64,000 nucleotides of DNA, taken from contig JBLDXI010000012.1 in the NCBI GenBank assembly GCA_047495785.1, positions 124,001-188,000 of the forward strand, given 5' to 3'. The notes under the pieces were generated by a model. That model was not told the origin of the DNA. It made no database searches and worked only from the letters and a program-made list of their open reading frames with translations. Of this stretch, positions 7,109-61,786 are shown in pieces (the first letter of the stretch is position 1; each line of letters opens with the position of its first letter). This DNA comes from Lepidodermella squamata (taxonomy: Eukaryota; Animalia; Gastrotricha). The position numbers and the translations under genes were made by a program.

Positions 7109-7495
7109 TTAGTTAGGTGCCATCGGCTTGATGTTTTTTGCACTCGAAAGTCGCATTCCGTTGCGGATAATCATCGGATGTCCTCTGATCCATTTAACCT
7201 TCGGCCGAACTTCCGTTGAATTCAGCTTGCTGGTTACAACTCGAATCTTCTCGCGATTGAACTGCACACGCTGCGGATTGTTGTCTTGCCGCAACGTTTC
7301 GTTCCAGAACGTTTTCGCAACTTGTCTACTGGTTTCCTCCTCAGCGTGTGAGCTGTCATCATTCAGCCAAGTCAGAAATTTCTCCAAGCGGCGTTCACCA
7401 TTTTCTAAGCTCAAGGCATCTGACGACGTTTGGGTGCATATCAGGCCTCCTATGGCTAGGTGGAAGATCAAGGTGTGATAAACAGTTGGAAACAT
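7109..7495 (-). CDS. Small secreted protein/peptide precursor (GRP-motif family)
   Basis: Signal peptide; RR site; KVKWIRGHPMII motif. Confidence 0.75.
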   Translation of the reverse strand: MFPTVYHTLIFHLAIGGLICTQTSSDALSLENGERRLEKFLTWLNDDSSHAEEETSRQVAKTFWNETLRQDNNPQRVQFNREKIRVVTSKLNSTEVRPKVKWIRGHPMIIRNGMRLSSAKNIKPMAPN

Positions 7496-7790
7496 GTTGA
7501 AAGCTAGAAACTATACTGAAATGACCTGAGTCACTTTACGTAAAGCCACGTACACTGAGTTTGCTTTATTAATTTCCGCTTTCTCATTAGTGTTTCCTGC
7601 GAGCGAAGTGCTTACCCGGTTTGACCAAATAAGTTTCGCACTTTTACGGCTAGGTACTAGTTACTACTATCAGGTCATGACGACACTTTCCAACTTTATT
7701 ATTCCCAGAACGCCCACGGACTATGAATCAAAGGGTAAAGATTTTCCGAAAACTATTGCTAACAATGAAAAAGTGTAGCACTGGCTTGAC

Positions 7791-8210
7791 TCATTCATCA
7801 AAAAACAAGTCTTCCTCGCGATCGTTCGGCCCGTGCTCATGAGTTGAGTGGTGGACTTTATCGTTGGCAAATACGTCACGCATATCAAGAGAATCGAGCG
7901 CGTTTTCGTTGTTCATATGCGGGTAGGCTGACAGTGACGTGTGTTGCGGCGTTTCGTCCTGATGACGGCTTAAGGATCGAGGCAGAATGTAGGTGCCATC
8001 GATCAGGTAGTAACCATGTATGTCGTCAATTTCGTCATCGTCGTGCTCTTTCTCCGCTGATTCAACTGAAGAGTGACGATGGAGTAGCCCGGATATTGTG
8101 TTGAACGGGTTGTGAGAGCCAAACATTTTCGACGGCTTGTAAGGTCGGCAATCGATATTAGAGATACAAACAGCGACCAGAATGGCTAAAACTAGGTTAA
8201 ATCTCGTCAT
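7791..8210 (-). CDS. Small secreted His/Asp-rich protein (GYYL family)
   Basis: Signal peptide; LHRHSSVESAE and GYYLIDGTYILP are shared with the 8875 and 9755 ORFs. Confidence 0.85.
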   Translation of the reverse strand: MTRFNLVLAILVAVCISNIDCRPYKPSKMFGSHNPFNTISGLLHRHSSVESAEKEHDDDEIDDIHGYYLIDGTYILPRSLSRHQDETPQHTSLSAYPHMNNENALDSLDMRDVFANDKVHHSTHEHGPNDREEDLFFDE

Positions 8211-8874
8211 TTTTCTTGATTTTCACTAAAAAGGCTTGAAAATTGTTAAAAAATTGGCTCGGTTATTTGATTATAATGAAAAGGTGTAGAACGAGCATGC
8301 CCACTGGGCAACATACATCCGCGGCAAAGTCCGGGGATTTAGGGATTCCGCTGGTGACGCCTATGCAATATTCTCAATTCTTCATAAATATATCGAGTGC
8401 ATGCAAATTATTTGTATGTGTAAAATAGCTATACAAATCAATTTACAGCCACAAAGGACATTGCAGGGTAGTGTATATTCAATTAATAGAAACGATATTT
8501 AAACACCACGCATTGTCAACTTAAGTGGTAAAAACCGAAAAAAACAGGTAATGAAGCGGTAAAAGATTGATATGTCCGATGTCCGCTCACCTTTCCCGCT
8601 GAAAAATAGTTGTTTGTTTGGGACAGAAATCACGAAAATTGATTGCACCTGTTTGGCAGATTTGATTTTCGGCCAAGTAGCAACTCACTGCAGATTTGTA
8701 AATGTGAGAGTGCGGATATGATGATTCTTTTATCAATCGAATCCTGTATCCTGTCTGTGATAGTCTGAATCAATTACCGGTTTGCAAATAAATTTATTTC
8801 AAGTTCGTGATTCATGAGGGTCAGATTCAATTACTGCCCCTAGATCAAGTACTGCATCTCTGGGGTATATATTA

Positions 8875-9201
8875 TTATTTGTTTTCGTAGTAATAATAGT
8901 AATCATCAGATTCGTTGTCGACTGGCGCTGCTGGCTGCTGCGGCTGGACGTCATTAATCGGCGTCAAGTCATTCTCCTCGCTCGCGTCCCTAGCCGGCTT
9001 CACGGGGAAAAAGTACTGGCCATTAATCAGATAATAGCCGAACTCATTGTCCATGTCTGCACCAGCGTGATCTCGCTCAGCCGAGTCCCGTGACCTGTGG
9101 TGATGCAGGCCTTTCGATAAAGTAGAAAATCCTCGATTTTCACCAATCATTAAAGCGAGGATGATAAAACAAGAAAGCAATGTTACGGAGGACATGGTCA
9201 T
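8875..9201 (-). CDS. Small secreted protein (GYYL family)
   Basis: Signal peptide; LHHHRSRDSAE; GYYLINGQYFFP; poly-Tyr tail. Confidence 0.85.
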   Translation of the reverse strand: MTMSSVTLLSCFIILALMIGENRGFSTLSKGLHHHRSRDSAERDHAGADMDNEFGYYLINGQYFFPVKPARDASEENDLTPINDVQPQQPAAPVDNESDDYYYYYENK

Positions 9202-9754
9202 AACTTTGTAGCATCAATGAAATGTAGAACATTGGGTCTATGAAAGCAAATTTATTTATTCACTGACAAAAAGTGTCAGACAATCCTTTTCTTCACCATA
9301 CCCGAGGGAAAGTTATAACGCAAAACAAAATCAGTGTAAAAATGATTGGAGTGGATATTCGTACTCCAATAAGTACGCGTTTTTGACTTAGAAAGGGACA
9401 TCGGCTCGAAATGTTCTACTTTTCAAACTTAGTAAAGCTCAGGCGTCATCTGATTGGAAAAGGCGATTGAGCAGAACCTTTCAGATAGGTCAGGAAGCTC
9501 AAAATTCAGTTGTAATGATAAAATCAAACAAAAATAAGCTTTGTTGACAAGAGGCCAGTTTGTTTTTTCCAACCAGGTGGAGTTTGCGAGTCTTTAGCAA
9601 TTTTTTTTCAATTATCCGCTTCTGGAACCTCTTCTAAGTACAAAGACACGAAAATGCGTACCTATTCTAGTACGAGTATCCAATCCGAAATTTTATTAAA
9701 TGATAGATACCAGCATCCACAATACAATAGTTTACAGAGAATCAGATGCTCATG

Positions 9755-11751: not shown

Positions 11752-11958
11752 TTAGTCGTAATCGACCGGTGCCTTGCCATTTCCTTGCCAAAACAGCCGC
11801 ATTGGAACGCTGTCATCGAAATTGGCATAGCTATGCAGTGGATGATTCATCAGGGCGTAATGGAAGATCGTAGATCGCTTTACAATATTGCAGGTTGCCA
11901 AATTCAGAGTAGCCATCAGCAGTACAAGGGAAAGAAGGAAAAACTGCTTAGCAAGCAT
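11752..11958 (-). CDS. Small secreted peptide precursor (WQ motif)
   Basis: Signal peptide; KR site; LFWQGNGK. Confidence 0.75.
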   Translation of the reverse strand: MLAKQFFLLSLVLLMATLNLATCNIVKRSTIFHYALMNHPLHSYANFDDSVPMRLFWQGNGKAPVDYD

Positions 11959-12907: not shown

Positions 12908-12958
12908 GTGGCTGTAAAAACGGTGTCATAATCAAGAAGTTTTTCTCTCAACGCGACA

Positions 12959-14095
12959 ATGACCTTGTTATTTCTGCTTGCGGCGATCTGCCTCACGGGG
13001 CAAAGTGCATCAGCTGGGTTGACGTACCCTATCGTCCACACTGGCATCGAAGAATTCACGAACGACATCACGTACATTACCAAGCCGAACCCAGGTCAGG
13101 CATTCTACGGCCAGGATGGTCACTACCCAGGCATTAAGGCCAGTTACAAGGACAACAATGACGGAACCGTGACTGATCTCGTCACCGGTCTTATGTGGCA
13201 AAAGTCAATGGGAAGCAAGATGCTCTACACCGCGGCCGTAGGTGCTGCTAATACTCTACGTCTCGGAAATTACGACGACTGGCGAATCCCGACTATCAAG
13301 GAGCTGTACTCTCTCATGCTCTTCACCGGTTACTACGGCACGTCATCGAAAAAGTTTATCGACGACGTTTTCGATCAGCCCTACGGCAACACTTCAGCCG
13401 GCGAGCGGGATTTCGATGCGCAAACGATGAGCTCGACCATGTACATGGGCTACGTTATGGGAAACAGCGAATGCAACTTCGGGGTCAACTTCATCGACGG
13501 CCGTATCAAGTGCTACCCGCGCAACAAAAATATCTACTTCAGGTTTGTCCGCGGCTCGACCAACTACGGATTTAACGACTTGATTTCAAACGGAGACGGA
13601 ACAGTCTCTGATCGGGCGACTGGTCTAGTCTGGCAGCAGTCTGATAGCGGTAAGGGTATGGAGTGGAAAGATGCGTTGGACTATTGCGAGAACCTTGTCC
13701 TGGCTGGCCGGGATGATTGGCGCCTGCCTAACGCGAAGGAACTGCAAAGCATTGTCGACTACAACCGAGGCCCGCAATCGACGAACACCGCCGCAATCAG
13801 CTCGCTGTTTCACTCCACTCAGATACCTGTCCCCAGCGGAGCGGCCAATGCTACGGAATTCGCTTTCTACTGGACCGGAACGACTCACAAGGACGGACCT
13901 CAGCCTAACATGGCGGCTTATGTTTGTTTTGGTCGCGCATATGGCAAAACCTCGTCTGTTATTGACGTCCACGGCGCTGGTGCCCAGAGGAGCGACCCGA
14001 AGAGCGCTCGCGGCCAAACCTACCCGCAATACTTCGGACCCCAGGGTGACTTGAGAACCGTCTACAACTTTGTCCGATGCGTTCGAAACGCGTGA
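12959..14095 (+). CDS. Secreted protein with two DUF1566 (Lcl-like) domains, bacterial type
   Basis: Signal peptide. Two repeats, DGTVTDLVTGLMWQ...DWRIPTIKELYSL and DGTVSDRATGLVWQ...DWRLPNAKELQSIVDY. C-terminal HGAGAQRSDPK...GPQGD...NFVRCVR. Intronless and visibly GC-richer than its flanks. Confidence 0.9.
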   Translation: MTLLFLLAAICLTGQSASAGLTYPIVHTGIEEFTNDITYITKPNPGQAFYGQDGHYPGIKASYKDNNDGTVTDLVTGLMWQKSMGSKMLYTAAVGAANTLRLGNYDDWRIPTIKELYSLMLFTGYYGTSSKKFIDDVFDQPYGNTSAGERDFDAQTMSSTMYMGYVMGNSECNFGVNFIDGRIKCYPRNKNIYFRFVRGSTNYGFNDLISNGDGTVSDRATGLVWQQSDSGKGMEWKDALDYCENLVLAGRDDWRLPNAKELQSIVDYNRGPQSTNTAAISSLFHSTQIPVPSGAANATEFAFYWTGTTHKDGPQPNMAAYVCFGRAYGKTSSVIDVHGAGAQRSDPKSARGQTYPQYFGPQGDLRTVYNFVRCVRNA

Positions 14096-18937: not shown

Positions 18938-19255
18938 TTACGAGTTAGGTTGTACTACGACAGGTCGACCATAAATCCACTGTATCTTCGGTCGGTCTTC
19001 CGTTGGGGGTAGCCGGGCGGTTTTTAGCCGATTAATATTCTTAGCAGCGTACTTTCGATCTTCATTACTCGATTTGCTGTTCGATCGACTCTTCAACAGC
19101 CGGCTGCTTTCATCTGCTAACAACAGCCACGGTTTGCCGTAATTGTCCAAATACAGACCAACGACTGATTGAGACTGATCGGGAAGCTTCAATACAGAGG
19201 AACTTGCAAGGCAGATCATAGCGGCTAAGATCAAGAAATGAAAAATATGATCCAT
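18938..19255 (-). CDS. Small secreted peptide precursor (GRP-motif family)
   Basis: ATG 19255; signal peptide; DRPKIQWIYGRPVVV. Confidence 0.85.
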   Translation of the reverse strand: MDHIFHFLILAAMICLASSSVLKLPDQSQSVVGLYLDNYGKPWLLLADESSRLLKSRSNSKSSNEDRKYAAKNINRLKTARLPPTEDRPKIQWIYGRPVVVQPNS

Positions 19256-19479
19256 CTTAAATTTGAAATGAATGGTTTCACACTGAAAAAACACCTCAAA
19301 GTACTGAAAATTTGATCTATGCATCGCGTGTCGAATAATGTGGGAGTACCACGCTGCGGAAGTATCAATTTCCAGGTATAATAATAATAAAAAAAGAAAT
19401 TTTATAGCACATCAATATACTTTTTATTTTGCCGCGCACAATAAACCGAGCTGTGAGGAAGTACAATAACGCGCTATTT

Positions 19480-21816: not shown

Positions 21817-22212
21817 CTAGTTTTGAGTGCCCTTTGTCTGAAACTTCGTCCCATATCGCCTGTTCTGGTACTGGATCCGATGTGATGATGCCGGCCTGCT
21901 GTGAAGGGTATCCATAAAATTCTTCAGGTATAACTTTACATCCTCAGGTAAAGTTGATGCAGCTTGGTGGCTAACCGTCGACCGGCCTCGCTTGCCAATG
22001 AGAGGCCATAGCCAAGGATTGCCGGTATTGTAAGTGCTCGGCTCGTAATTTTGGTCGTAATTAATTTCCTCGTCTTGAACGCCGTCTTCGTAGTTGTTGA
22101 TTTGCCACTGAGCTATCGCAGCTTCATCCTCTGGGAACTCGGCATCCAAAGATGCAGAGACGACGTTAATAACAAATAAGGCTAATAAAGCTAAAATCTT
22201 TGGCATGGTCAT
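21817..22212 (-). CDS. Secreted prohormone-like precursor
   Basis: ATG 22212; signal peptide; acidic region ending PWLWPLI-GKR (amidation plus cleavage site). Confidence 0.85.
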   Translation of the reverse strand: MTMPKILALLALFVINVVSASLDAEFPEDEAAIAQWQINNYEDGVQDEEINYDQNYEPSTYNTGNPWLWPLIGKRGRSTVSHQAASTLPEDVKLYLKNFMDTLHSRPASSHRIQYQNRRYGTKFQTKGTQN

Positions 22213-23199: not shown

Positions 23200-23530
23200 G
23201 TTGGGTTTTTTCGTTGTAAAATGATGGTCAGCGAGTTTTATTTTATATTGTATTATGGCGGGTGTGTGCGCGTCCCCCGCGCCTTTTCGTAATTAAGGCT
23301 GCGCATCGCTGAGCACGCAAATAGCAAATAATCCCCATTCAGATTTTCTTCTATTTTTTTTTACTAATTGATCTTCACGTACAAACACATCTGACGTGAT
23401 TCCTTTGGGAAGTGACAACACTTACAGTAAAAGCACTTGTAGTTGAGACTAGACCGGAAATAGCACAACAATTTCGCAAAAAACGGCAAATAATTAAGTC
23501 ACTTCAATTTTCGGCCTGCCAAAATTGTCG

Positions 23531-23731
23531 TCAAGTGCGATTTCCATCCCATACAAATTGAGGGTTTTTATTGGCGTTCGAGTAGCCGGCCTTTTGATTT
23601 TGCTTGATAACCGAAATTGAGTTCGAGAAGCGACGCCGTTGAATTGCAATGTCCATGTAATCGCCAAAGGGTGAACAGGCCACGGTTACCAAAAGGAGAT
23701 AGCAAATCAAGACGGCGAAAGTTGCCTTCAT
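23531..23731 (-). CDS. Small secreted peptide precursor
   Basis: ATG 23731; MKATFAVLICYLLLVTVACS leader; RRR; PQFVWDG. Confidence 0.75.
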   Translation of the reverse strand: MKATFAVLICYLLLVTVACSPFGDYMDIAIQRRRFSNSISVIKQNQKAGYSNANKNPQFVWDGNRT

Positions 23732-24661
23732 GTTATTAGAAAACTCCGCCCTAAAATTGGATAAAATGTTGTTTTTAATATTTTTGAGAAATCGCGCAGA
23801 GATTGCAAAATCAATTGAGATAAGATAAGGCCAGCAATCGGTCATAAATTATTTATGTTGTTTGTGTCACGCTTCATTTATCTATCATTATCCCTGATTT
23901 GATAGAACTTGGTCATTTTTGTTATTATTGCTACGTCAAATGTTTTCGGATGACTCGAGGGAGAACGAAAAGTGAGCGAGCCATGAATAATGGCCAACAA
24001 AAGCATCATCGTGCGTTTCGGGTGCGTTCATGTCAATGTCAAGGTGCCTTAAAATGCTCTCGTAGAATCCAGGGACTCATATATAGTTCATGGTTCAGTA
24101 AACTTACTATCAAGTACAATGTCTCATTCTCTAAAAATTCGGCATTTAAGACCAAAATTCTGGGCTTTTATGTTTGTTAGCAACCGTTGCTATGGTAAAG
24201 CGTCATTTTTTTATTTTCGATTTCTATAATTCCAAGATGGCTCTTCAGAAAAACTCTAAAACCCCCTTCATATTTCGAGGTCAACTTGAGATGAGCTGAC
24301 CCTTTTTTCTGAATAATTAGCGGGAGGAGCAGCGTTTTAATGGGACAATGTACCACCTAAAAAATATGAAATTAGAACATTTTAAAACATGTGCATCCTT
24401 CCGAATCGAATATATTACAAAGAAAATATAATTTTATGAGTATTCGGGACATTTTTTGCTGGCAAATGGAGTTGCTTCATTGAGGTAGGTAATTAAGCGT
24501 AAAAACAAGTCATTTTTTTGTAGAATTTCGATAAATGGCCACGCACGAAAAATATTTTATTACTCTTAAGAGGGTATCAAAAAAACATCAGGTATCTGAA
24601 ACAAAGAAACAGTTTATTTATTGGTCTCATGGGTATCTGATGACGTCGTTGCGGGGGCAAA

Positions 24662-26609: not shown

Positions 26610-27023
26610 TTATTCATCGAAAATACTACGCAATTCATCGGCGTTGTCATTCAGAAATTGGAATCGGCCCGTTGTGAAGGGGCGGGAGAGTGTCCACAAC
26701 TGCGCAACCGCGCCCTGGTTGTTTTGCTGATGTTGGCTCCTCGAAACGCTGTTTGACTGCTTATTACTGCTCCTCTGCTTATTCTGCTGCTGCTGCTGCC
26801 CCATCATCCTATTCATCGCGTCCAAGTGGCCGATTAGCGTTTGATAGCTTGGGTTTGTTAAATAGTCATTCAGCTCAGTGTCGAGGGACGAAAAAGGCTG
26901 AAAGTCGAAGTTTTCGTGGATGTTGGAGTTGAATTTCATAACTTTTGAGTCGGCGATAGGCTTGCAATCAGTTCCAAGCAACACTGAACAGGCCAATACA
27001 GCCAATGGGAGAAGTATTATCAT
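26610..27023 (-). CDS. Small secreted Gln/Asn-rich protein
   Basis: Signal peptide; poly-Q/N low-complexity segment. Confidence 0.8.
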   Translation of the reverse strand: MIILLPLAVLACSVLLGTDCKPIADSKVMKFNSNIHENFDFQPFSSLDTELNDYLTNPSYQTLIGHLDAMNRMMGQQQQQNKQRSSNKQSNSVSRSQHQQNNQGAVAQLWTLSRPFTTGRFQFLNDNADELRSIFDE

Positions 27024-27725
27024 GATAGATAAAGCCTAATATATGAAAGGTAGTCGGATTTGTTTAAATTACAATCGCAATATAATCGTTTCTATTGTAC
27101 TGGGAATTAAATAAGCAATCAAATTAAATTACATTTCGTTATTATCGAAAATAAGCAGTTTTTATATGCTATTGAGTTATATAAAATCAGTGATATTTTA
27201 TTTAGAAACTATAGGGCTTTGGCTGTTTTTCAAGGCAACCCCCCGCACATTTCTAGGGACAAACATGAGGATTAAGTTAATGACTCATACCCCGCCTATA
27301 GTGTGCAAAAACATGTAGAGCTTACGCAGCGGGTTTTCTAAAAAAAATGTTATCCTCAGTTGTGGGCGCTCTCGGGCCGAGTTTTTTTTTATAACGGAGG
27401 GAGAATTGTATTAGGCGATAAGTGGCCGTCCGATATAGAGAAAAATCGCCATAATAAGTTCTTCATTCAGGATTAAAAAAGTGATATCTTGTCATTATTC
27501 AGCTTTCAGCTCTAATTGGGATTACAGGAACACTGCAGGCTATATCGATGATTGCTCATTAAGTGATTGCAAAATCCTGCAAGAGACCTGGAGCTAAAAA
27601 ATTCTAATTATTTCAAAATATTAAGACTAAAATATTTCCAGTATTTCTAAATTTTTATTAAAAAAAATGTCCAAGATGTTTTTGAAGGAAGTTGTATAAG
27701 CACGTGATGCGCAGGAGGATGTTGA

Positions 27726-27983
27726 TCACCCTTTCGGATTCATGAAAAGTGCTCGTCCGAAGCTGCGCATAGCTGGCTTGAAAGGCTCTCTGAACGGAAA
27801 ATTGCTTCCGATATTCGGCCACGCCACGTCATCTGCGTATTCGTCACTGCTCGATCCGTCGTCGTAGTACGGATTCCACGGTTGTTGACTGCCATGCACG
27901 TTCCTACTGTAAATCAGATGGGCTGAATTAGAGCAGCAGATAAACACGGCGAGTAGTAGAAGAAGAATTCTAAAATTTCGCAT
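27726..27983 (-). CDS. Small secreted peptide precursor
   Basis: Signal peptide; MRSF-GR and terminal NPK-G possible amidation sites. Confidence 0.8.
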   Translation of the reverse strand: MRNFRILLLLLAVFICCSNSAHLIYSRNVHGSQQPWNPYYDDGSSSDEYADDVAWPNIGSNFPFREPFKPAMRSFGRALFMNPKG

Positions 27984-28123
27984 ATTTTTATTTTTTCAAA
28001 ATAAAAACAAGAAAATTCGTCAGCGAGTTTTTATTGTTTACGACAAAATTTCACGCTCAACTTCTTTTTTTTATTGCTTTATGTGAGCGCGTCTTGAGAC
28101 ATTCGATAATTAACAATCGGCTC

Positions 28124-28507
28124 TCAGCGCCGCCCGCGGCGAATGACAACCGGCCTGCCGTGTATCCACCGGACAATCGGACGGTCATCGTCAGTATTCG
28201 AGAACGCGACTGAATCATCTTCATCAAATTCCCTCGCTTTATCATCCTGAGGTGCCACAACAACTTGGCCGTTGTAGAAGGACCGCTGCCGCTTAGGCAT
28301 CACTGCATCGTCCACGCCGTGTGAATCATGCGTTATCGAATTGTATTGCTGTAGCTGCATGTCGAACCACCGCCTGAGCCGGGCATCCCGATCTAAATCG
28401 CTCGATTGGTAATAGCTATCGATTGGTCCGAATTGGTACTGCTCAACGGAATCATCGGCGAAAGCTTTCGCGAGAAAGAGTATCAAAAAAATTGTCTGCA
28501 AATGCAT
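28124..28507 (-). CDS. Secreted peptide precursor (GRP-motif family)
   Basis: ATG 28507; signal peptide; RR and KR sites; DRPIVRWIHGRPVVIRRGRR. Confidence 0.85.
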   Translation of the reverse strand: MHLQTIFLILFLAKAFADDSVEQYQFGPIDSYYQSSDLDRDARLRRWFDMQLQQYNSITHDSHGVDDAVMPKRQRSFYNGQVVVAPQDDKAREFDEDDSVAFSNTDDDRPIVRWIHGRPVVIRRGRR

Positions 28508-29016
28508 GTCTAATTGCCTGAAAATTCGAAAATTTGAATTTATATAATGCAACATCAGAAGATGTTTTTGAGCAGGATGAAAGCTGACAGATGTATCGAC
28601 CTTTATGGCAAAAGGTGACCGTGACCACGAGATTCGTGCTATCGTCTGATCGAAATTAATCAAATCAATTCATCTTATACGGCCCCCTCCTCTTCAAATA
28701 ATGACTAAACATACGGGGACGTTTTTTTTCTATCAGCGTAGGATTCAGAGGCAATTTTTCACCACACCCTGGTCTGGATATACTGCGTCATAAATAAGGC
28801 TTATTTGATATATTGGAAAAGCGCTAGAAAAATTGAAAAAATGTCCTTTCGGCTGCTAATATAATTGAATGATAAAAATCAGTCAGTTGAATGAGTAATA
28901 AAGTCGTACCAGTATATTATTTACCCCAAAAGAGTCGAAATTAGTACGCTTAATTAATTAATTTATTAATTAGCGATGCTGAAATTTGCATGCAGAACAC
29001 AAGAATGGGACTGTTT

Positions 29017-29310
29017 TTAGTACGCCATAAGTGGTCTGAAAATAGGCAGGCGATACGAAATAGGTCGGCGAAAGTACGAACCAGGGTAGAAAAAAGCGTC
29101 GTTATTCAGCTCTGAAATGGCATCATTGTTATTGTCCGTGATAGCGTCGCCGAACAGCATGTCCATGCCACTTCGCCTGTATACGGTCAGGGCTTCTTCA
29201 TCCGGCGAATCAGGTGAATCGAAGTCGCGCAAATCTTCTGGCGAACTCGTGACAGATCCGGAGCAAATAATTATCGCGAAAATCATGACAGCAGCGAAAA
29301 CTCTCAACAT
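29017..29310 (-). CDS. Secreted peptide precursor
   Basis: Signal peptide; acidic spacer; two RR sites. Confidence 0.8.
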   Translation of the reverse strand: MLRVFAAVMIFAIIICSGSVTSSPEDLRDFDSPDSPDEEALTVYRRSGMDMLFGDAITDNNNDAISELNNDAFFYPGSYFRRPISYRLPIFRPLMAY

Positions 29311-29458
29311 GGCGTTTTGTTTTTATTTGAGAACGCAAATATGAAAAACAAAACAAAATCAACGTGGCTGGGCCATTTTATATTATAACTTCCTCGCTGG
29401 ATTTAAATTCAATTAACAGGGATGACCATACGCAATCATAGGAAATCGATTTCTGCCA

Positions 29459-29773
29459 TTATATAGTGTTTCTAAGGCGGTAATTCGTGAATTTAGCGTT
29501 CGCATCGTGGTTCAGCTTTGCCTTGATGACGTAATTCGTGTTACGCTGCGTTGTCGTCGACCATAGCTCAGGCCTGTCAACGTTTTTCAGGTCGTTACGC
29601 ATCATTTTCACGGCGCCCCTCTTGTCGGCGAAAAATGGATTTCGCCCTTCGAAGATGTCGTCATACGTTGCTTGTCCCGTGTAAAAATCAGCCAACAATT
29701 CATCGTAAGGTCCGCAGTAACTCGTGGCCAGAAGAAGACCAGAAATTATCAGCAAAACATATAGATAAGACAT
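29459..29773 (-). CDS. Secreted prohormone-like precursor
   Basis: Signal peptide; acidic pro-region; KR. Confidence 0.8.
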   Translation of the reverse strand: MSYLYVLLIISGLLLATSYCGPYDELLADFYTGQATYDDIFEGRNPFFADKRGAVKMMRNDLKNVDRPELWSTTTQRNTNYVIKAKLNHDANAKFTNYRLRNTI

Positions 29774-29907
29774 TTTTGTGTAAAAAAGCGGGAAATAATA
29801 GTTCCACGATTATTTTTATTTTAATACACCCGAGAAATTTCCTAAATATGGCTATTATCTATCATGTGACGGATTAAGTTAGTTCGGTAATGGAAGGCCT
29901 CTAATTC

Positions 29908-30378
29908 TTATCGACGGCCGACTCGAAGGAGGCGGGGAGAGCCACTTCGGCCAACGCGGAGAAGACGGGCATTACCACTGCGGCCGACTCGCAGCAGACG
30001 GGCATTTCCACTCCGGCCAACGCGAAGGAGCTTCGCATTTCCACTCCTGCCCACTCGGAGTAGCTTCGCATTGCCGCTTCTGCCCACTCGCAGTAGCCTC
30101 GCATTGCCACTTCGTCCGACGCGGACGAGGCGCGGCTTCGACGCGTCTCGCTTCATAAGCGGGTGGTACATTTCGCCGTCGTCGACTGACAGCATGCTCG
30201 GGTTGTAGTCGGATGCAGTCGGGACGCCGTAGCTGAACGGGTAGTCGTAGGCCTCAGGCAGGTCGAACAGCTTCGCGAGGGCGCCATCGTCCTGTCCGAG
30301 CAACAAGCTCATAGGAATCGCCTCAACATTCACAGCGCAAAGCGCGGCCAAAGCGATAAAGCAGCTAACGGAAATCAT
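29908..30378 (-). CDS. Multi-copy amidated neuropeptide precursor (RVamide; SGNA[R/K]LLRV-G-R)
   Basis: Signal peptide, acidic pro-region and KR, then 7 tandem peptides each ending RV-G-R, the last ending GRR-stop. Confidence 0.92.
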   Translation of the reverse strand: MISVSCFIALAALCAVNVEAIPMSLLLGQDDGALAKLFDLPEAYDYPFSYGVPTASDYNPSMLSVDDGEMYHPLMKRDASKPRLVRVGRSGNARLLRVGRSGNAKLLRVGRSGNAKLLRVGRSGNARLLRVGRSGNARLLRVGRSGSPRLLRVGRR

Positions 30379-30533
30379 TTTATTTTTCGTAAAGTGCGAA
30401 ATTGAAATAGGAAATAAAAACGGGTCTGAATGTTATTGCTAGATCAGCGCGCAATTTATTTGATGATGATGACCATGCGAAAATTGAAAAGTTAAACCCG
30501 GATATGGGCACTCGAGTCAATTACGCGTGGCTT

Positions 30534-30842: not shown

Positions 30843-30909
30843 CTCGGAAAAAAAATTGAATGCCGTGATCAATTTTATTATTCATAACCGTGCAGCGGCA
30901 TTAAAACAA

Positions 30910-39807: not shown

Positions 39808-40134
39808 TTAGTCTCGTAAAGCTTTCGCCCAAGTCAGAAGTTCTTCTTCGGCAGCCGCTGCACTCGCCTCGTCGTCGCCATCTTCATCTTCCGCCGCCTC
39901 AACCGGCTCGTCCTCTTCCCGAGCCGTATCGTCATCTTCCTCGGCCTCTCGCTGCAGCCTCTCCATAACTTGCATTTGATACATAAGCTGTCGCAGCATT
40001 TTGTCCTGATCCGGGCTCGCGATTTGCGAAGTTTCGTTGCTGTCCGATTTAGTGACAGGTGCAGAGTCGGCCGAGCCTAATACGAGGCTGACAACTAGGG
40101 TTGCCACAACGGCCAACATCGTTAAATTCGACAT
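39808..40134 (-). CDS. Secreted highly acidic (granin-like composition) protein
   Basis: ATG 40134; signal peptide; E/D-rich tract. Confidence 0.85.
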   Translation of the reverse strand: MSNLTMLAVVATLVVSLVLGSADSAPVTKSDSNETSQIASPDQDKMLRQLMYQMQVMERLQREAEEDDDTAREEDEPVEAAEDEDGDDEASAAAAEEELLTWAKALRD

Positions 40135-40631
40135 TGTTATATATATACTCGGACCTAAAAGTTTGGAAAAAATCCGAAACGTATATATCTCACAAATTAC
40201 GTCCGGCGATGAGAGGGTGTTATTGGCGCGATGTTTTATTATTGAGTTTCTTGAATGAGCTTGTTTGTTCCTACACAAAATCACGCGCATCGATTCCTAC
40301 GTTGCATTGTCTGCGGCCTATAAAGCAATTTAGGAAAAAAGCCTTCATCATTCCCACGCATGATCGAATTGCTTTCTACGCAGCACACCTGTAAAATAAA
40401 TAAGAGAAACGCACCAGAAATATTCTATATTATAGTATGAGTTGGATAATCGCATGAAAAAGTGCGTGTAAAAATAGAAACGAAATATTCCAATTTTTCG
40501 TGAAAACTCTGAGGGCGTCTCATTTTTGTCAGTGCTTTTCGGTCCCATCAGACAAAAAAATGGCGATAATCACGGCGAAAAATAGTTTTATTACCAAAAA
40601 AATATATGAGTCATAAAATGGAAGTATATCC

Positions 40632-46165: not shown

Positions 46166-47099
46166 ATGGATATGATTATTTTAATAATTTCAAGTTTTTG
46201 CCTTCTGGTTTATGGGGCGCCGAATCCTGACATGCCCCCGCCTGCCCCCACGCCATGGGAGCAAAGAGATAGTATGATTATGGGGATGGCTCAGAAGCTG
46301 ATATCTCACTATAAGGAAGATCCAACCAACGCGAAAGATGCGACATGTTTGTCCCAACTCGGCGACAACCAAGTCGTAGAATTTGTCATCGACCTGGCGC
46401 CTTCGCCTGCCAGTGACGCAACAGATCGAATGGTCAACGACCACCCGTTGAAGTTTCTGATAGGCGGGCAGCTGAAAGACGCAACCGAAGCGTACTTTGA
46501 GACGATTCAAATGTTTTTGGATGACGTGACAGTTGGGATGAAGCCTGAGCAAACGAGCGCTGTAATTGTGGATGGCAGCCTTAAATACTACATTCGAGGA
46601 CGATCGGTCAATGCCTCTGGGGATAAGGATAAAGAACCTGACAATATGGCCGATTTGTTGGTTCTTTACCCAAAAATGACGAACTACGTCGAGGACAGTC
46701 CTTATAAGGAATATTGGACTAACAACCTTGGCCGAATGGTTCGTCTGGCTCTTGAGGCTAGAAACAATGGCCTTCCTCTCGGTAAAATAATCCACCTTAA
46801 TTTTCATGAATTTTTGAAATTTATTTCAAGGCCTGGGCAAGAAGGATTCGAATCTGAAGCCGATCTTTCGTGTCGTTATCACTGATGGAGCATCTGGATT
46901 AGCTGTAACTGATTTGACCGATGATCCGGGCATTACCTATGTCGTCGACGTTGGGAATCGGCGCTGCTTGAATAAACTAACTGCCGATCTTATCCTGAAG
47001 ATGCCCGGTGTTTACGATGCAGATAGCCTGCTGAAAATGGCTTTCCTGCCGAGAACCTTGCGATACCTCGCTTGCAAAACTGGCATTCGAGGCCAGTGA
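46166..47099 (+). CDS. Secreted protein with divergent VWA-like domain (exons 46166-46781, 46831-47099)
   Basis: Signal peptide; VEFVIDLAPS (degenerate DxSxS), VVITDGAS and ITYVVDVG. A 49-nt intron joins two track ORFs in frame. Confidence 0.7.
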
Positions 47100-49371: not shown

Positions 49372-52203
49372 ATGTTCACCGCAAGCGATCAGTACGAGGT
49401 TAAGCGACAATTGGGCAGTGGTGGCTTCGGTTTCGCCTACCTGGTTCAGCAGCGAGGTGTTGCCGAAAATGGCTACGTCAACGAACGGCTCTACGTCATT
49501 AAGGAGGTTAATCTAGCCCGGTTGGAAGCAAGTTACGCCGGCGATGAGGCGAATCAGGCCAAAGTTCGTAAATACACGTTCGACGAGGCTGAAATTATGA
49601 AATCGCTCGATAATCGTAATATCGTCAAAGTTTACAGCTCATTTCTCGAGGGCGATATTTTTCGAATTGCCATGGAGTACTGCGACTCTGGCACGTTGAA
49701 AGATGTGATAATAGCTCAACGCGGCGTGCCATTTGCCGAAACGCAAATTCGCCACTGGATGGCTCAATTGGTCACGACGTTGAAATTTCTGCATAATCGA
49801 AGAATTTTACATCGAGATGTCAAAGCTGAGAATGTCTTCCTAGCCGCTAATAAAACTATAGTCAAGCTCGGTGATTTCGGCATAGCTAAATCGATGAATA
49901 AGTAATGCTGGTAAAAATTAATACATTTTTATTAATTTTTTCTGGATTTTTCAGCACCTCAGTCGGCCACACTTTCATAGGGACTCCTACCCATATGCCT
50001 CCTGAATTACTTCGCGGTGAAGATTACACTTACAAGTCAGAAGTTTGGGCCCTTGGAGTGCTACTTTACGAATTAATCGCTCAACGTTTACCTGTAAATT
50101 GCGAAAAAAATCCCAACAACATTTTTTGGATATTTTCCCAATTTTTCAGTTTACCGGAAATAATTTTGGAATAATATTTCAGCTCATCATGGGGTGAGTT
50201 ATGCCTCTGTAAAAATTTTTGAAATATTTTTTGTCAATTTTTCTAGACCTGAGCCAGCGCCGTCCTTGCCAACCTCATACAGCTCGGATCTCCGAGAACT
50301 CGTTGAGAACAAAATGCTCAACAAAAATATGGAAGAGCGGCCAACAATGTTGGAAATTATCGGCGAATCTTTTATACTTCAAACCATCGCAGAGATGGCA
50401 AATTTTCAAAAATCTCATCACCCAGCTCCAGTGGCAGTCATCATCCAGCCAGAGGTTCCACAAGTGCCAAGCAATCCGTCTAGACCTGTAAGCGTTTTTG
50501 GATTTTGGTCAAAAACCTATAAAGAGGATTCCAACACCAAATTTATCGAAAATTATGTGTTTGAATTTCAATTTTTTTGTTATCCGGCCAACCGATACTC
50601 CTCACTATTCCGCACATTTTCCGCCAATTAAGACTTGAAAATACATTTCTGTCCGCAGGGCCGATATCGATTTGAAGTATCGATTTCGAAAATAAGTGAT
50701 TTTTCCGATATTAGCTTTCTAGGAAGCCAATATTTAAAAGTCTCCACAGCGTGTAAAATGAGATGCGAAGTCATATCTCATGGCCAGAAAAATCTTAGAA
50801 AAAGTCTAAAACGCCGTAAGAATAGTAATCAGGTATGTCTCATGTGAAAGAGATTAAAAAAATCCGAAGAAATTTAATCCAACCAGGTAAAAACCAAACT
50901 ACCGAACCATTTACCATCAGGATTTTTAGGGTTTTCTCCAGTAAGTTTTCGATTTCTTCGGTAAAATCGTGGATAAAGGATGGACGATTCTCCCCGTGGG
51001 CTTAATTTCAAAAAATTAGGTCAATGTCTTTAAGGTTTTTTTGAAATTACAAAATGATTGCACTACTTATGGTACACACTGTACACACCCGAGGGTACCA
51101 GGCAGGCAGCCTTTCATAAAAACCGGGGTCATAATGTTATCATTATAGATCAAAAGAGAAAATTTTGAAATTGCAAAAAATCGAACAATTTAGTGCTGGA
51201 ATTTTAACTTTATTAGCGCAAATATTTTACGCTTTTTTTTAATAAGGTGCATGACCTGTTAAAAGCTGCGCAAGACGGAGATTTGCTAACAGTACGTGAC
51301 ATAGTCACATCGTTCAATCAAGATCAGCTGACGTCACCTGAAACGTGGTCACGAGCCCCGGGAAATGCAGACAACGACACCCCGCTTCACTTAGCAGCCT
51401 GGCGTGACCAGATCGACGCTGTCAAGCTAATGTGGCCCCAGATGTCAGGACTAGCAGTATGGCAAAACAACGACAAACAGGCGCCGATTCATTTAGCCGC
51501 CCTCAGTAATGCGAAACGCGTCGTCGAGTTTTTCCTAGAACAAAAGCCGGAAATTGTCGAGCTGAAAAGTGATTATCTAGGCCGAAATGCTTTACACGCC
51601 GCTGCCGAGCGTGGACACCTTGATCTATGCAAAATTCTTGTCTCAAAATTTAAGGCGGATGTTTTCGCTAAGACAAATCAGGAAGATGGGGAGAAACTAG
51701 CCATTCATCTCGCTGCATTTTGCGGCCATGTTAATATCGTCAAATTCCTACTTGAAACTTGCCCGTATCTGATCGATGCTCGAACTGGAGATGGCGATTG
51801 GCCTATTCATTTGGCTGCAATTGGAGGTCAGGTTAAAGTCGTCGAATTCCTCATATTACAGCGAGGGTTGAATCCTAATGTTAGGAATGACAAATACGGA
51901 AGAACAGCTCTTCACCTAGCCTGCGAATTCGGCCATCTTGAACTCGTCGAACGATTAGTCCTTACCCTAAAAGCTGACATTTGGGCTGAGACTAAGGTTG
52001 AAGATTTCAAAAAATTGCCGATTCACATGGCGGCGTGGCAGGGCAGATTTGATATTGTCAGATTCCTGATTGGTTACCAGCCTAAACTTGCCGATGCGAA
52101 GGATTCTCAGGGCTTCACGCCGTTACTACGAGCTCAAGCAAGTGGAGAAATCAATCAAGCGAGACAGATTGTCGATTATCTAGAATCTCTACCACCGATA
52201 TGA
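49372..52203 (+). CDS. NEK-like Ser/Thr kinase fused to C-terminal ankyrin repeats (exons 49372-49901, 49955-50093, 50150-50193, 50247-50487, 51247-52203)
   Basis: GSGGFG, YVIKEV, HRDVKAENVFL, KLGDFGIAK and GTPTHMPPE motifs. About 8-9 TPLHxAA-type repeats. A phase-0 donor at 50488 matches the acceptor at 51246; the ankyrin ORF starts at GTG right after AG. Confidence 0.8.
50659..50730. repeat. Partial copy of the atcgat dispersed repeat, in the kinase intron
   Basis: gccgatatcgatttgaagtatcgatttc...gatttttccgat matches the 56964 copy. Confidence 0.6.
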
Positions 52204-56073: not shown

Positions 56074-56963
56074 TTTTAAAGAGGATATGCGGAAAAAAAC
56101 ATGAATAAAACTTTATTTTTTAAATTAATTTTAGGGCGTCAGGCGATTGGCGAGACTTTATTGATTGAAAAATTACATTACCATCGAGTTGTAATTCGAT
56201 TGAGTAGCTGGATGTAAATTCTGAGCTTAGTACTTCAAGTTGAACAAATGTAAGCAATGATGGAAGGAATAAATTGACATTCGCACTTGTAAAAAAGGAA
56301 AAAGAAGAACTTCAAAATTTAGCCTCTAAAATGACCCTCTAGGGACTTGGGTCCGTACTTTAGCTAGCGACCACTACGACCGATGACGAACAATAGCATG
56401 GAAAAATAACCAAAATGCATAAAAATTGAGAGCAGAAAAACTCCTTGATTTGCGGTCAATTAAAGCATTTAGGTACAATAAAAGCTACAAAAAAACAAGA
56501 AAATTGAAAAAATTCTGGGAGGAAATGTTCGAAAAATGTGCAACAAAAAAACATCTTCCAAATTTGGCTCTTTCCTGGGACTGGGAGTCGCCGAGAATGC
56601 AGTTTCCTTGTTTGATTCAAGGTTTCGCATCACTACGTATCAACACTTCGGGAGTCTGAAATTATTCGGAAAATTTCAAAATGGCGAAAAATCACAAAAA
56701 TTCGTCAATTTCACGAAAATCATGTGACTTGTCTCAATAAAATTGTGAAATAATTATCCATCGATTTATATATGGCTCATGGCAATAGCATGCAAGTTTC
56801 GGCTGCTGATTTAACCTAGTTTTTATTGAAATGGTCGACGGTATGGATACAATTTGGACGATTTGGAATTTTTTGTTTCCATGTCTCACTGATAGACTTT
56901 CATATTACGCGTACTTCGCGATATGAGTGGTCAGGTTACGAATTATAGTTCATCCTATACCTA

Positions 56964-57123
56964 GAGCCGATATCGATTCCAAGTATCGATTTTCCAAATC
57001 AGCGATTTTTCCGATTTCAGCCGTCTTGGAACCCAACATCGATAATTTTTCTACGTAGCTTAGGGCACCATATAGCTATAATAAAAAATCCTAGGTTCAG
57101 GATTATCACCAGTATTATCGATC
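56964..57123. repeat. Dispersed atcgat repeat copy
   Basis: Reverse complement of 21033-21206. Confidence 0.75.
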
Positions 57124-57801
57124 AAAAATAAAAACAACGAAATCGCAAAGAATCTGAAAAATGTAGTGCCAGGGACGCTTAAATTTAGTGCTGGAACCCC
57201 ATTTTTAGTGGTGGAAATATTTGGTGTAAAATGTGTGGCCGAAGATATGGGTTAAATGTTGGACACCTCATTAGCATATGCGCAGTTATATTGAACCGCG
57301 CAGAAATCAAATTTTTCATAGAATCAAACGCGCTCAACTTGTACCAAATTCCACTAGGTTTCCTTTGCTCTTCCCGTCACTTCATATTAGCGCTATATTA
57401 TAGCTTTAGGTCGTGCCCAACTTTTCGACTTGAACTAAATACCTCATTCAGGAGCAGTCAACTTGATGTGATAGCGCTTCTTGAACATATTTCTCAGTTT
57501 CACCGCACTCATGTCGGCGATAATTTGATAAACAACTGTGTCATCATTTGACGTGAGGAATGTACATGACATGGCGAATTGGACATGATGATCGAAAAAA
57601 TGCGGCACGCTGTGCTATCTACTTACTGCCGAAGCGGCTTAATAGCAAAATAGACCACCACAGGTTCACACTTATCTGTCAGTAGCACAACAACAGTGAG
57701 CTATGCGCTATTCAATAAAATTTAGCCAGCAGTTTAAATCAGCAGTTCAAATGTAGACTCAACAACATTTTGGCTTTTTTTCAGGCTGCAACTCACTTCT
57801 C

Positions 57802-58552: not shown

Positions 58553-58903
58553 ATGTCGTACCTGCTTACCAGCAATTTTGCGATTTTATTCGCTATACTC
58601 AGCCTTACATTCCACGAAAATTCCGCGACCTCAAACCGAGATCTGGAACGTTCCATCGGCAACCCGCTGCACTGGCAAACGTCGGATACGGCGATTTCAA
58701 CAGCTACTAATGCCGATGTTTTGCAGAATTATTTTAAAATTTTGATGCGGCTCGATGAAAATGTCAAGCAAAAAGCTACTAAGAAGGGCAAGGAGCTGTT
58801 AAACAACGCTATGATGGCTGTAGTCGCCGAGATGCGGAAAAACGCTCGTCGAGCTACGCAAAGCCGCTCCCGAGCCGAAATACCCATACATCCAATTATA
58901 TAA
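58553..58903 (+). CDS. Small secreted protein (HWQT/helix family)
   Basis: ATG 58553; signal peptide; PLHWQTS...AMMAVVAEMRK. Confidence 0.85.
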   Translation: MSYLLTSNFAILFAILSLTFHENSATSNRDLERSIGNPLHWQTSDTAISTATNADVLQNYFKILMRLDENVKQKATKKGKELLNNAMMAVVAEMRKNARRATQSRSRAEIPIHPII

Positions 58904-58955
58904 TTTATTTACTTCTACAATGAATTTCATTTATTTACAATAAAATTCTGAAATT

Positions 58956-59914: not shown

Positions 59915-60292
59915 ATGGATAACTTAACCATCTTATTATTCGTAGCAATCAGCCTTTTCGTCGAAGCTTCACATCAGGCTAACATTCGAGGCCAGCCTGT
60001 TAAAGAAAAGCAAAAGATCGAAACAAGATCTGGTCCGGTTCGATTTCACTGGCAAACCGAGTCGACCGCAGCGGAAAACGAGCACTATTCGCGGTTTTTA
60101 GAGGCTTATAACCGGCTCCTTGGCAGGCTCAAGGTCAGCACGAAGGTCAGCGCGGATGGCAAGCCGACTGGGTTCGACGAAAATCTGCCATTGGCTATCA
60201 GCGCCCTGGTTGAGGAATTCAAGCGCGGGTCAATGTTGAAGACAAGGCTCGCCAAGCAAAAACAATTAGGCGATTTGAATAAACAGAATTGA
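59915..60292 (+). CDS. Small secreted protein (HWQT/helix family)
   Basis: Signal peptide; RFHWQTE...LAISALVEEFKR. Confidence 0.88.
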   Translation: MDNLTILLFVAISLFVEASHQANIRGQPVKEKQKIETRSGPVRFHWQTESTAAENEHYSRFLEAYNRLLGRLKVSTKVSADGKPTGFDENLPLAISALVEEFKRGSMLKTRLAKQKQLGDLNKQN

Positions 60293-60376
60293 AATTCCGA
60301 TTATTTTATATAATAACTCATTTATTACATTTGAAATTATGCCGACTAGCACGGTGAAATAAATTATATTTTTTTA

Positions 60377-60607
60377 TCACGGAAAGCGCTGGATAGGTCT
60401 GTTTCTATTGAAATTTGATCCTAGATTGCTCCAAACCATGCCTTTAATTCGCTTCCAAGTCGACGGGCGGACGGTTGCAGCAGCCATTTTTGAAGAGAGC
60501 GGCCTGTGAATTCTATTTGCCCGGCCACTGCTTGCCGTCTCGGCTTGAAGCGTCGAGAAGGCCAAAATCATTAAAGTCGCTGTAAATAGAAGCGCTAAAC
60601 AATTCAT
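60377..60607 (-). CDS. Small secreted cationic peptide
   Basis: Signal peptide; KR; R-rich. Confidence 0.78.
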   Translation of the reverse strand: MNCLALLFTATLMILAFSTLQAETASSGRANRIHRPLSSKMAAATVRPSTWKRIKGMVWSNLGSNFNRNRPIQRFP

Positions 60608-61399
60608 CCCGCTATATTGCGTAAAATAAATGATAAGTAACTAAAGACAGGGCATCGTAAAATAAGACCAAGTAAGGGTGCTGCGTGGCGATGCTAAGCT
60701 GTGGTTTCCTATTAGATACGGCTATGCGTCCTAAAAATGAAATCAATTATTCATATGAAAATCGGCTCAAGAGTGCAGCTATCTGTTAATGATGCGCTAT
60801 TACGTAGGTCAGCCCACCTTATAGTCAAATCACACGTGACTGAGAGTGGCTTGTTAACGTCACAACAGCAGACTATTCCGACAACTCGTCTAGTAAACAA
60901 TTGATAATAGGGATTTAATTTTTAATATTAAAATTGGAACAGCAATTTTTTTTCAAGAAATCGAAATAAATCATGAACGGAATTCTTCAGCCATAATAAA
61001 ATGGCCTATATATTTCGTCTTCGCACCCTTGGTTATAGTCATCATAAGTACGAATAAATATTATTTTCCTCATTGATTACGGTCAATTTTTCATCATTAG
61101 AGATTTATTACTTTTTAGCGTGGCCATTGAGTGGACACGCAGCTATTATTAGTGCGAACTTTTGATGCTGGGAATTTTTATTTCCTATATGCCCACGCTT
61201 GCGTGCGGGCATTTGATTTACTGAAGTGCGCAATAGTTATACGAAAAAGCGGGAACGGAAGTTGCTACTCAAATTTACGGGGTTTTTCGTGTAAACCCGG
61301 AATTTCCAGGCTACAATATCCTTATAACGAGGCCTGATTTTTCTCACTTATTCGTTAGTTCGTATAATTCTGGTCAGGTCAATTTTTTGCTCGAATATT

Positions 61400-61786
61400 A
61401 TGTTGCGATTAATTATCGAAATACTCTCAGTTTTTGCGGTTGTAAATTTCGAATTTTCCGCTTCATGGCCAGTCGACGTAATGGATAGGTCAGCTCGTTC
61501 TGCCGAGGTGGATATGACAGGCAGGCGATTTCACTGGCAAACAGAAATGACAGCGAAGCAGACAGAGATCCAAACTAAACTTCTCGAAGGCCTTTACCAT
61601 CAAATTCTCGAAGAATTGACTGCGATTGAAAGTAGCGGTCGCGTTGATGGCACTGAAGCCACTGATCCAGCTATGCTACAACAGGCGGCTATGGCGATCG
61701 CCAAGGAGTACTGGCTCGCTGCCATGTTGAAAGCTCAGCTTATTCATCATCACAGCGACGATGACAAGGCGCATGATCCTCAATAG
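61400..61786 (+). CDS. Small secreted protein (HWQT/helix family)
   Basis: Signal peptide; RRFHWQTE...AAMAIAKEYW. Confidence 0.88.
   Translation: MLRLIIEILSVFAVVNFEFSASWPVDVMDRSARSAEVDMTGRRFHWQTEMTAKQTEIQTKLLEGLYHQILEELTAIESSGRVDGTEATDPAMLQQAAMAIAKEYWLAAMLKAQLIHHHSDDDKAHDPQ

Follow-up and report, generated by a model that had tools for sequence, protein, structure and literature searches.

Animal neuropeptide genes are usually dispersed or lie in clusters of few paralogues, in contrast to the 58 genes in 55 kb described here from a 64,000-nucleotide (nt) stretch of Lepidodermella squamata DNA (contig JBLDXI010000012.1, positions 124,001–188,000; hereafter the window, to which all coordinates refer). 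In the vertebrate SCPP cluster (caseins, enamel matrix proteins, histatin, statherin), genes in tandem, ~20 or more of them, encode disordered secreted proteins that are poor in Cys; these local duplicates have diverged past alignability, and are multi-exonic with a common exon plan and an SxE phosphorylation cassette. The Drosophila Bomanins and the nlp/cnc genes of C. elegans are clustered, taxonomically restricted host-defence peptide genes. The same is true of the arminins and other antimicrobial peptides of Hydra (PMC10945409). The cluster in our window, spanning 7109–61786, is old, lineage-specific and locally duplicated, and consists of 58 transcribed, intronless genes for secreted products, with transcription and the absence of introns sampled in nine of them.

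The locus resembles each of these systems in part. It shares with neuropeptide preproproteins, the substrates of PC1/3–PC2, carboxypeptidase E and PAM, a signal peptide, a small Cys-free precursor, an acidic spacer, KR/RR sites and Gly amide donors; it differs in that its genes are related in sequence to no known peptide family, that dibasic sites are not enriched, and that a quarter of the genes lack them. Shared with the clustered host-defence genes are short, orphan, secreted peptides encoded in tandem, some in which an anionic pro-piece precedes a cationic C-terminal part and some with predicted amidation, but the present cluster is much larger, comprises at least seven unrelated-looking families and is under very strong purifying selection. 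Like the SCPP genes, ours are tandem, Cys-poor, locally duplicated and predicted to encode disordered products; unlike them, they are intronless (cDNA, nine genes), specify much smaller products with convertase and amidation signals, and show only mild S-x-E enrichment.

A dense cluster of short secreted-product genes

The window is eukaryotic DNA of ~41% G+C. Our own open reading frame (ORF) listing and leader scan returned 58 non-overlapping ATG ORFs of 54–156 amino acids (aa), each opening with an uncharged, hydrophobic leader. The minus strand carries 52 of them and the plus strand six (bias P=3e-10), at a median inter-ORF gap of 294 nt. This reproduces exactly the count, sizes, leaders and strand split given in an initial annotation made from the sequence alone. 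All 58 have an uncharged hydrophobic 9-residue core inside the first ~27 residues together with a −3/−1-compatible site, the makings of a predicted signal peptide. No extra ORF of 28–53 aa meeting all these criteria was found in a search of the cluster.

Could these be chance ORFs, or decayed pseudogenes, that happen to have hydrophobic starts? Small size and lack of homologues are all that favours this. With a strict hydrophobicity cut-off, 52 ORFs were retained in 7–62 kb, whereas 30 Markov-2 shuffles averaged 1.7 and never exceeded 7, a 30-fold excess.

Three genes (18938–19324, 23531–23845 and 39808–40290, ranges given from the upstream start) have an in-frame ATG 23–52 codons upstream of the leader ATG. 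In the 39808 gene a TATA-like box is located downstream of that upstream ATG.

Transcripts, gene signals and promoters

Gene signals were counted over 59 ORFs, the 58 plus a 239-aa neighbour at 46166–46885. AATAAA falls within 200 nt past the stop in 50 of the 59, concentrated 20–100 nt downstream (random-window background 0.28), and a purine occupies −3 of the ATG in 55. TATAWA at −110 to −30 is weakly and modestly enriched (11 of 59 vs a background of 0.086).

Three public read runs were compared over 27001–33000, a 6-kb interval with nine ORFs. Run X1 behaves as genomic DNA, with an even depth of ~70–100 over the interval. Run X2 is a complementary DNA (cDNA) library, because its tails are SMART template-switch/PCR adapter; its contigs cover all nine ORFs, with zero coverage in the intergenic bins 27201–27600, 28601–28800 and 32401–32800. 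Depth in run X3 is patchy and ORF-centred, like that of run X2. Absence of transcripts, which the initial annotation had named as fatal to its proposal, is thus not what we see: cDNA was found for every ORF examined. Since no skip-type (splice) joints were reported in the cDNA across these nine ORFs, they are intronless.

The gene at 31972–32274 is transcribed from a TATA promoter of its own, without a spliced leader. Its cDNA 5′ end is at ~32291–32299, ~17–25 nt upstream of the ATG, and its TATA box, TATAAAAA, at ~32316–32323, ~25 nt further upstream. Spliced-leader trans-splicing and operons, an idea raised by TTTTCAG-like strings before many ATGs, were rejected for this gene because of that TATA spacing and because the extra cDNA letters consist of the template-switch oligo and of a 5′ untranslated region in a strain variant. 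The TCAG strings fit an initiator. No motif common to the upstream regions was found beyond enriched AATAAAA and an initiator-like TTTTTCA, and Rfam gave no match.

A 14-mer, TAAAACTCGCTGAC, occurs at 23227–23240 and 28019–28032 on the minus strand (0 and 1 mismatch), 28–49 nt upstream of ATGs. It is limited to the promoters of the 22888 and 27726 genes, whose proteins lack similarity, and may have been left from a promoter that the two once shared. A cDNA contig at 31822–31948 ends at 31948 in a plus-strand A run, the wrong side for the poly(A) of minus-strand genes; this could reflect antisense transcription, internal priming or an artefact of the library.

Purifying selection

Differences among the three runs in the same interval comprise 19 synonymous, three nonsynonymous and 12 non-coding changes. 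Synonymous and nonsynonymous sites in the nine ORFs stand at 644:2227 (1:3.46), giving a binomial P=3.5e-10 and a ratio of nonsynonymous to synonymous rates (dN/dS) of ~0.05, an estimate from a small sample of 22 substitutions in nine genes that represent strain or species differences between close lineages. The sampled genes are under strong purifying selection; its absence was another outcome that the initial annotation had held against its own proposal. In these nine genes the mature peptide did not show the rapid or diversifying evolution known from host-defence genes. Indels inside ORFs measured 3, 6 and 3 nt, those outside 1, 2, 2, 24, 6 and 2 nt. Codon usage lends weak support to real genes, correlating with the window's ordinary genes at r=0.62, against 0.39 and 0.54 for off-frame readings.

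The shuffles, poly(A) signals and start context, cDNA coverage, the excess of synonymous changes (19:3) alongside in-frame indels, and the scarcity of Cys and sequons set out below together refute the artefact reading, to which we give next to no credence.

Composition of the products

Cys accounts for 0.14% of residues past position 22, vs 2.3% in other ORFs of the same DNA, and 53 of the 58 ORFs have none after the leader, much as the initial annotation had said. Sequons (N-x-[ST]) are depleted three-fold, with 12 found and 36.9 expected from within-protein shuffles (z=−4.5). Avoidance of both across genes that do not align would be expected of chains that transit the endoplasmic reticulum (ER) and have to stay linear and unglycosylated. 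The joint avoidance is also a simple signature, usable to find similar loci genome-wide.

In other respects the products are very varied, with His-rich, Gln-rich, Lys-rich and Asp/Glu-rich members; ten are strongly acidic (net −8 or below) and 11 strongly basic. An acidic N-terminal half is paired with a basic C-terminal half in 19 genes, and the reverse arrangement is found in three. S-x-E is mildly enriched (33 vs 20.8). Most of the products are predicted to be disordered. Structure models of a family A member and a family B member both had a predicted template-modelling score (pTM) of ≤0.33.

Such features might be expected of structural or matrix proteins, that is, fast-diverged disordered chains acting uncleaved to form or regulate cuticle, egg coat, cement or biomineral in the manner of SCPP proteins. 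The chains are indeed Cys-free, mostly predicted to be disordered, and unalignable yet locally duplicated, and the S-x-E excess and the many acidic members fit as well. We nevertheless consider a matrix role improbable, since the products are very small (~35–135 aa after the leader), low-complexity repeats are missing except in one clear repeat gene, amidation-type ends and KRG are enriched (see below), and depletion of sequons is unexpected for matrix glycoproteins.

Families and local duplication

The peptide genes show no similarity to one another at the DNA level; the window's only recent tandem copies are the channel-like genes to the left of the cluster. This accords with the initial annotation, which had ruled out a simple recent tandem array. 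Its further statement that most of the genes cannot be aligned holds at the DNA level, whereas at the protein level over half can be grouped. Pairwise phmmer of leader-trimmed sequences, run against reversed and shuffled decoys, linked 17 ORFs, and decoy-controlled iterative profiles put 31 of the 58 in seven groups (10, 7, 5, 3, 2, 2 and 2 members), leaving 27 singletons; the 239-aa ORF was also a singleton.

Family A has 12 genes in two subgroups and the C-terminal motif [KR]-[VI]-x-[WFY]-[IMV]-x-G-[RK]-P-x-x-[VI]. Its tail forms a beta-hairpin in the AlphaFold model (local pLDDT ~88), the remaining chain being of low confidence. The ten family B genes have [YF]-H-W-Q, followed in longer members by a predicted helical hairpin. 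Family C comprises three acidic genes with a G-Y-Y-L-I-D-G-x-Y motif, and the two family D genes (31972 and 35728) are 50% identical.

Adjacent genes belong to the same family in 11 pairs vs 2.8 expected (P<1e-4). Because family members tend to be neighbours, we conclude that the cluster grew by local tandem duplication. Nucleotide similarity is gone, so the cluster is old, and its recent evolution has been conservative. Repeated local duplication and then deep divergence would have built it, each gene keeping its own start context and poly(A) signal. That half of the 58 orphans fall in families of neighbouring genes argues that duplication with runaway divergence, not de novo birth, explains much of the apparent novelty. 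The locus thus informs the origin of orphan genes: its 58 "orphans" are demonstrably not independent inventions.

The genes are listed below by coordinates and strand. Rows rest on the leader scan, and families on blastp/jackhmmer, with alignments in addition for A and B; "-like" marks a weaker link. Cleavage is written KR-G where KR precedes Gly, and differences are those among the read runs.

7109–7495, minus: family A1 (GRP-tail), 128 aa
7791–8210, minus: family C (acidic, GYYLIDG motif), 139 aa
8875–9201, minus: family C, 108 aa
9755–10009, minus: family C, 84 aa
10182–10439, minus: acidic singleton, possibly C-like, 85 aa
10548–10844, minus: family B (HWQ), 98 aa
11120–11467, minus: family B, 115 aa, Gly end
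11752–11958, minus: family B (short), 68 aa
14200–14409, minus: family B (short), 69 aa
14650–14883, minus: family B (short), 77 aa
14986–15327, minus: singleton, 113 aa
15556–15969, minus: singleton, acidic pro-region, then KR, then basic tail, 137 aa
17097–17447, minus: singleton, 116 aa
17971–18234, minus: family A1, 87 aa
18938–19255, minus: family A1, 105 aa
19480–19848, minus: family B (divergent, without HWQ), 122 aa
20084–20530, minus: family B, 148 aa, RR immediately before YHWQ
21817–22212, minus: singleton, predicted amidation/cleavage site ...PLI-GKR-G, 131 aa
22378–22656, minus: singleton, GGRP near C-terminus, 92 aa
22888–23199, minus: singleton, Gly end, 103 aa, promoter 14-mer in common with the 27726 gene
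23531–23731, minus: singleton, 66 aa
24662–24892, minus: singleton, strongly basic, 76 aa
25028–25381, minus: singleton, acidic pro-region, KR-G, 117 aa
25769–26128, minus: singleton, strongly acidic, without dibasic site, 119 aa
26610–27023, minus: singleton, Gln-rich, 137 aa
27726–27983, minus: family E, Gly end, 85 aa; cDNA contigs, 4 synonymous differences
28124–28507, minus: family A1, ends ...RRGRR, 127 aa; 2 synonymous and 2 nonsynonymous differences; cDNA contig ends in SMART adapter at 28022
29017–29310, minus: singleton, 97 aa; cDNA, in-frame 3-nt insertion
29459–29773, minus: family F, KR-G site, 104 aa; cDNA
29908–30378, minus: multi-copy precursor, KR then seven copies of x4-R/K-L-[LV]-R-V-G-R, 156 aa; cDNA, at the top depth of 27001–33000; 3 synonymous differences
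30534–30842, minus: singleton, several RR sites, 102 aa; cDNA
30910–31212, minus: acidic, weakly D-like, 100 aa; cDNA
31367–31627, minus: family A1, RR then predicted 29-aa C-terminal peptide, 86 aa; cDNA, 5 synonymous differences, in-frame 6-nt deletion
31972–32274, minus: family D, KR-G, GK end, 100 aa; cDNA
35728–36072, minus: family D, KR-G, Gly end, 114 aa
37268–37576, minus: family A1, KR then predicted 33-aa C-terminal peptide, 102 aa
37780–38058, minus: family F, 92 aa
38260–38628, minus: singleton, acidic, 122 aa
39126–39290, plus: singleton, Gly end, 54 aa
39452–39667, minus: singleton, acidic, 71 aa
39808–40134, minus: singleton, extremely acidic (net −20), 108 aa
40632–41009, minus: singleton, His-rich basic, 125 aa
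41301–41591, minus: singleton, predicted amidation/cleavage site ...IIA-GKR-G, 96 aa
41823–42137, minus: singleton, Lys-rich, Gly end, 104 aa
42535–42957, minus: family A2, multi-peptide layout, four KR-G sites, 140 aa
44531–44887, minus: singleton, Gly end, 118 aa
45716–46039, plus: family A1, 107 aa
52292–52678, minus: family A2, motif internal with extra tail, 128 aa
53136–53492, minus: family A2, RRR then predicted 30-aa C-terminal peptide, 118 aa
54930–55217, minus: singleton, 95 aa
55407–55676, minus: family A2, 89 aa
55804–56073, minus: family A2, 89 aa
57802–58137, plus: singleton, the sole member with 3 Cys after the leader, 111 aa, weakest member
58553–58903, plus: family B, 116 aa
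58956–59330, minus: singleton, basic, 124 aa
59915–60292, plus: family B, 125 aa
60377–60607, minus: family E, basic, 76 aa
61400–61786, plus: family B, 128 aa, RR immediately before FHWQ

Processing signals and function

Our tentative reading, to which we give a little less than an even chance, is that most of the genes encode precursors from which the regulated secretory pathway would make peptides for signalling outside the cell, of neuro-, endocrine or pheromone type. It draws on the very low dN/dS, short conserved terminal motifs adjoining basic sites, the enrichment of amidation-type ends, and the scarcity of Cys and sequons, from which we infer cleavage, amidation, a signalling role and a cell type.

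The clearest case is the gene at 29908–30378, which has the layout of a textbook precursor (leader, acidic spacer, KR, then seven 9–10-residue units ending R-V-G-R) and predicts ...LLRV-amide peptides. Across the cluster, within-protein shuffles gave expectations of 1.3 KRG and 39.5 G[KR], vs 11 and 62 found. The C-terminus is Gly or Gly-basic, a potential amide donor, in a subset of ten of the 58 (3.7 expected, P=0.004), and in two genes (21817 and 41301) a hydrophobic stretch runs into G-K-R-G. In most of family A a dibasic site lies 29–55 residues before the C-terminus, and a cut there would free a hairpin-bearing peptide. In family B the HWQ motif comes immediately after a basic residue in 6–7 of the ten members.

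Several results weigh against this reading. Dibasic sites as such are not enriched over within-protein shuffles (KR 23 vs 23.5, RR 44 vs 36 expected); 16 of the 58 genes are without any, and ten genes are strongly acidic with nothing to cleave. Repeated peptides are clear in the 29908 gene (seven copies), partial in the 42535 gene (two GW... peptides) and absent in the other 56. Families A and B conserve 12–70 residues, and many members would act as proteins of 30–110 aa. None of the 59 ORFs matched Pfam or NCBIfam beyond chance, and no known neuropeptide family matched. The leader and cleavage-site calls come from simple rules, not from SignalP or NeuroPred, and the selection estimate from the small sample given above. 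Heterogeneous composition, lack of introns, few TATA boxes and tight co-orientation would also fit a gland or defence cocktail.

Given the 16 genes without a dibasic site and the ten strongly acidic ones, a uniform prohormone model fails. The initial annotation had assigned the cluster the layout of convertase- and PAM-processed precursors, with acidic pro-regions, KR/RR and Gly-basic sites in many members. That stands for some members, 29908–30378 most clearly, and is backed by the 19 acidic-to-basic genes and the enriched G[KR] and KRG; it is not general, with KR/RR at chance frequency. The layout perhaps suits a third to half of the genes, not "nearly all".

Were the products signalling peptides, each would enter the ER by its signal peptide and leave the cell as a short, linear, unmodified chain. 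Signal-peptide removal would be followed by a convertase cut at KR/RR, often between KR and G, then by carboxypeptidase trimming and amidation at an exposed Gly. The receptor-binding cores may be the C-terminal beta-hairpin of family A, the [YF]-H-W-Q N-terminus and helical hairpin of family B, and the ...LLRV-amide of the 29908 gene. The strongly acidic members without a cleavage site could be co-packaged granin-like cargo, or could be active uncleaved.

An exocrine or host-defence battery, quite possible in our view although short of probable, would make the locus a cocktail from gland, epidermis or gut (antimicrobial, mucus, adhesive, pheromone-carrier or seminal-fluid), with its genes switched on together in one cell type. 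The layout expected there is signal peptide, acidic pro-piece, KR and cationic peptide, as in frog-skin peptides, Hydra arminins, Bomanins and nlp/cnc, and the acidic-to-basic polarity of 19 genes against three in reverse agrees with it. So do the 11 strongly cationic products, His-rich and Lys-rich ones included, the heterogeneous composition, the dense, co-oriented, intronless genes each with its own promoter, and the presence inside the cluster of a secreted bacterial-type Lcl_C/DUF1566 gene. Amidation and multi-copy precursors occur among antimicrobial peptides too. On the other hand, secreted proteins of immune, venom or reproductive function seldom show a dN/dS as low as the ~0.05 found here, which suits receptor-constrained ligands better. 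The missing common upstream motif and the ten strongly acidic members also speak against a battery, and a predicted 9-residue amidated repeat and short terminal motifs beside basic sites are more typical of ligands.

A stronger form of the signalling-peptide reading, which we think somewhat unlikely, is that the cluster holds a large signalling repertoire not seen before, in which at least four new ligand families (GRP-hairpin, [YF]HWQ, acidic GYYLIDG and LLRV-amides) and ~27 singletons were born and kept in one 55-kb "nursery". If so, it would be by far the largest neuropeptide/hormone gene cluster that we know of in any animal, and would let one watch in a natural setting how new peptide ligands arise, presumably together with their receptors. 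Should the products be bioactive, they would supply dozens of ligands that lack known relatives and whose cores are short, conserved and easy to synthesise, and receptor de-orphanisation, peptidomics and knock-outs could begin straight from sequence.

Homology searches

No relatives were found in any collection searched, in keeping with the lineage-specific locus proposed in the initial annotation. The family A profile found none among 5.8 billion proteins, and metagenome contigs, scanned with an alignment of four family A members, gave no match. The 29908–30378 precursor, as a single-sequence query of large protein collections, returned no homologue; exact-sequence look-ups and a language-model atlas search were likewise blank, and the predicted peptides were not found in the literature searched. 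An exhaustive search of 1.84 billion representatives with the family B profile returned only bacterial Ig-like proteins with reiterated YQWQ, which we rejected as multi-copy chance matches. Because the organism and its close kin are seemingly absent from protein collections, these blanks mean novelty with respect to the databases, not absence from relatives.

The one parallel for an ...LRV-amide ending in the literature searched is the atypical CAPA-1 peptide of the beetle Tribolium, which ends in ...SLRVamide (PMC4210869, PMC6585902). This resembles the predicted ...LLRV-amide of the 29908 gene over four residues, which may be chance. The CAPA/periviscerokinin (PRXamide) core is F/L-P-R-[VIL]-amide, whereas the L-L-R-V-amide end predicted here is without Pro. 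CAPA precursors carry a mix of CAPA and pyrokinin peptides, the 29908 gene seven near-identical copies, and the precursors show no detectable homology. Judged by its predicted peptides, the 29908 precursor is not a CAPA family member.

Neighbouring genes and repeats

Ordinary genes lie inside the cluster: DJ-1 at 43.3–44.3 kb, a protein kinase at 49.4–50.6 kb and an ankyrin-repeat gene at 51.2–52.2 kb. The 239-aa secreted ORF at 46166–46885 (plus strand) stands amid the peptide genes; it has two Cys and no Pfam match, and is bigger than and unlike the others.

Within the family B run, an intronless gene at 12959–14095 (plus strand) encodes a 378-aa secreted protein with two bacterial-type Lcl_C/DUF1566 domains (E=6e-43). 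It sits in the highest-G+C segment of the window (47.7%), is without an exact copy on record, and is a candidate horizontal acquisition from bacteria.

To the left of the cluster, at 400–7000 (plus strand), are three tandem, short, multi-exon genes resembling Cys-loop channels, with 70–87% DNA identity. Pfam recognised neither half; by language-model features the transmembrane half scored 0.96 against Neur_chan_memb clusters. A very short intracellular loop, like that of prokaryote-type channels, seems to be present.

In a 3.4-kb gene-free gap at 32.3–35.7 kb, the depth of genomic run X1 rises over 32401–33000 from ~75 to 1,600–8,600, while cDNA depth there is nearly nil. The jump suggests that a high-copy repeat, or a piece of a transposon, has been inserted here. 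An imperfect minisatellite of ~17-nt period (TTCGCTGTT...) occurs at 2813–2995 and at 62112–62281, ~59.3 kb apart, flanking the cluster. Two pairs of short non-coding repeats, 50657–50733 with 56963–57039 (77 nt) and 51187–51227 with 57182–57222 (41 nt), are 76–81% identical, with ~6 kb between the copies. A small mobile element of which they form the ends, or a segmental duplication, may account for them.

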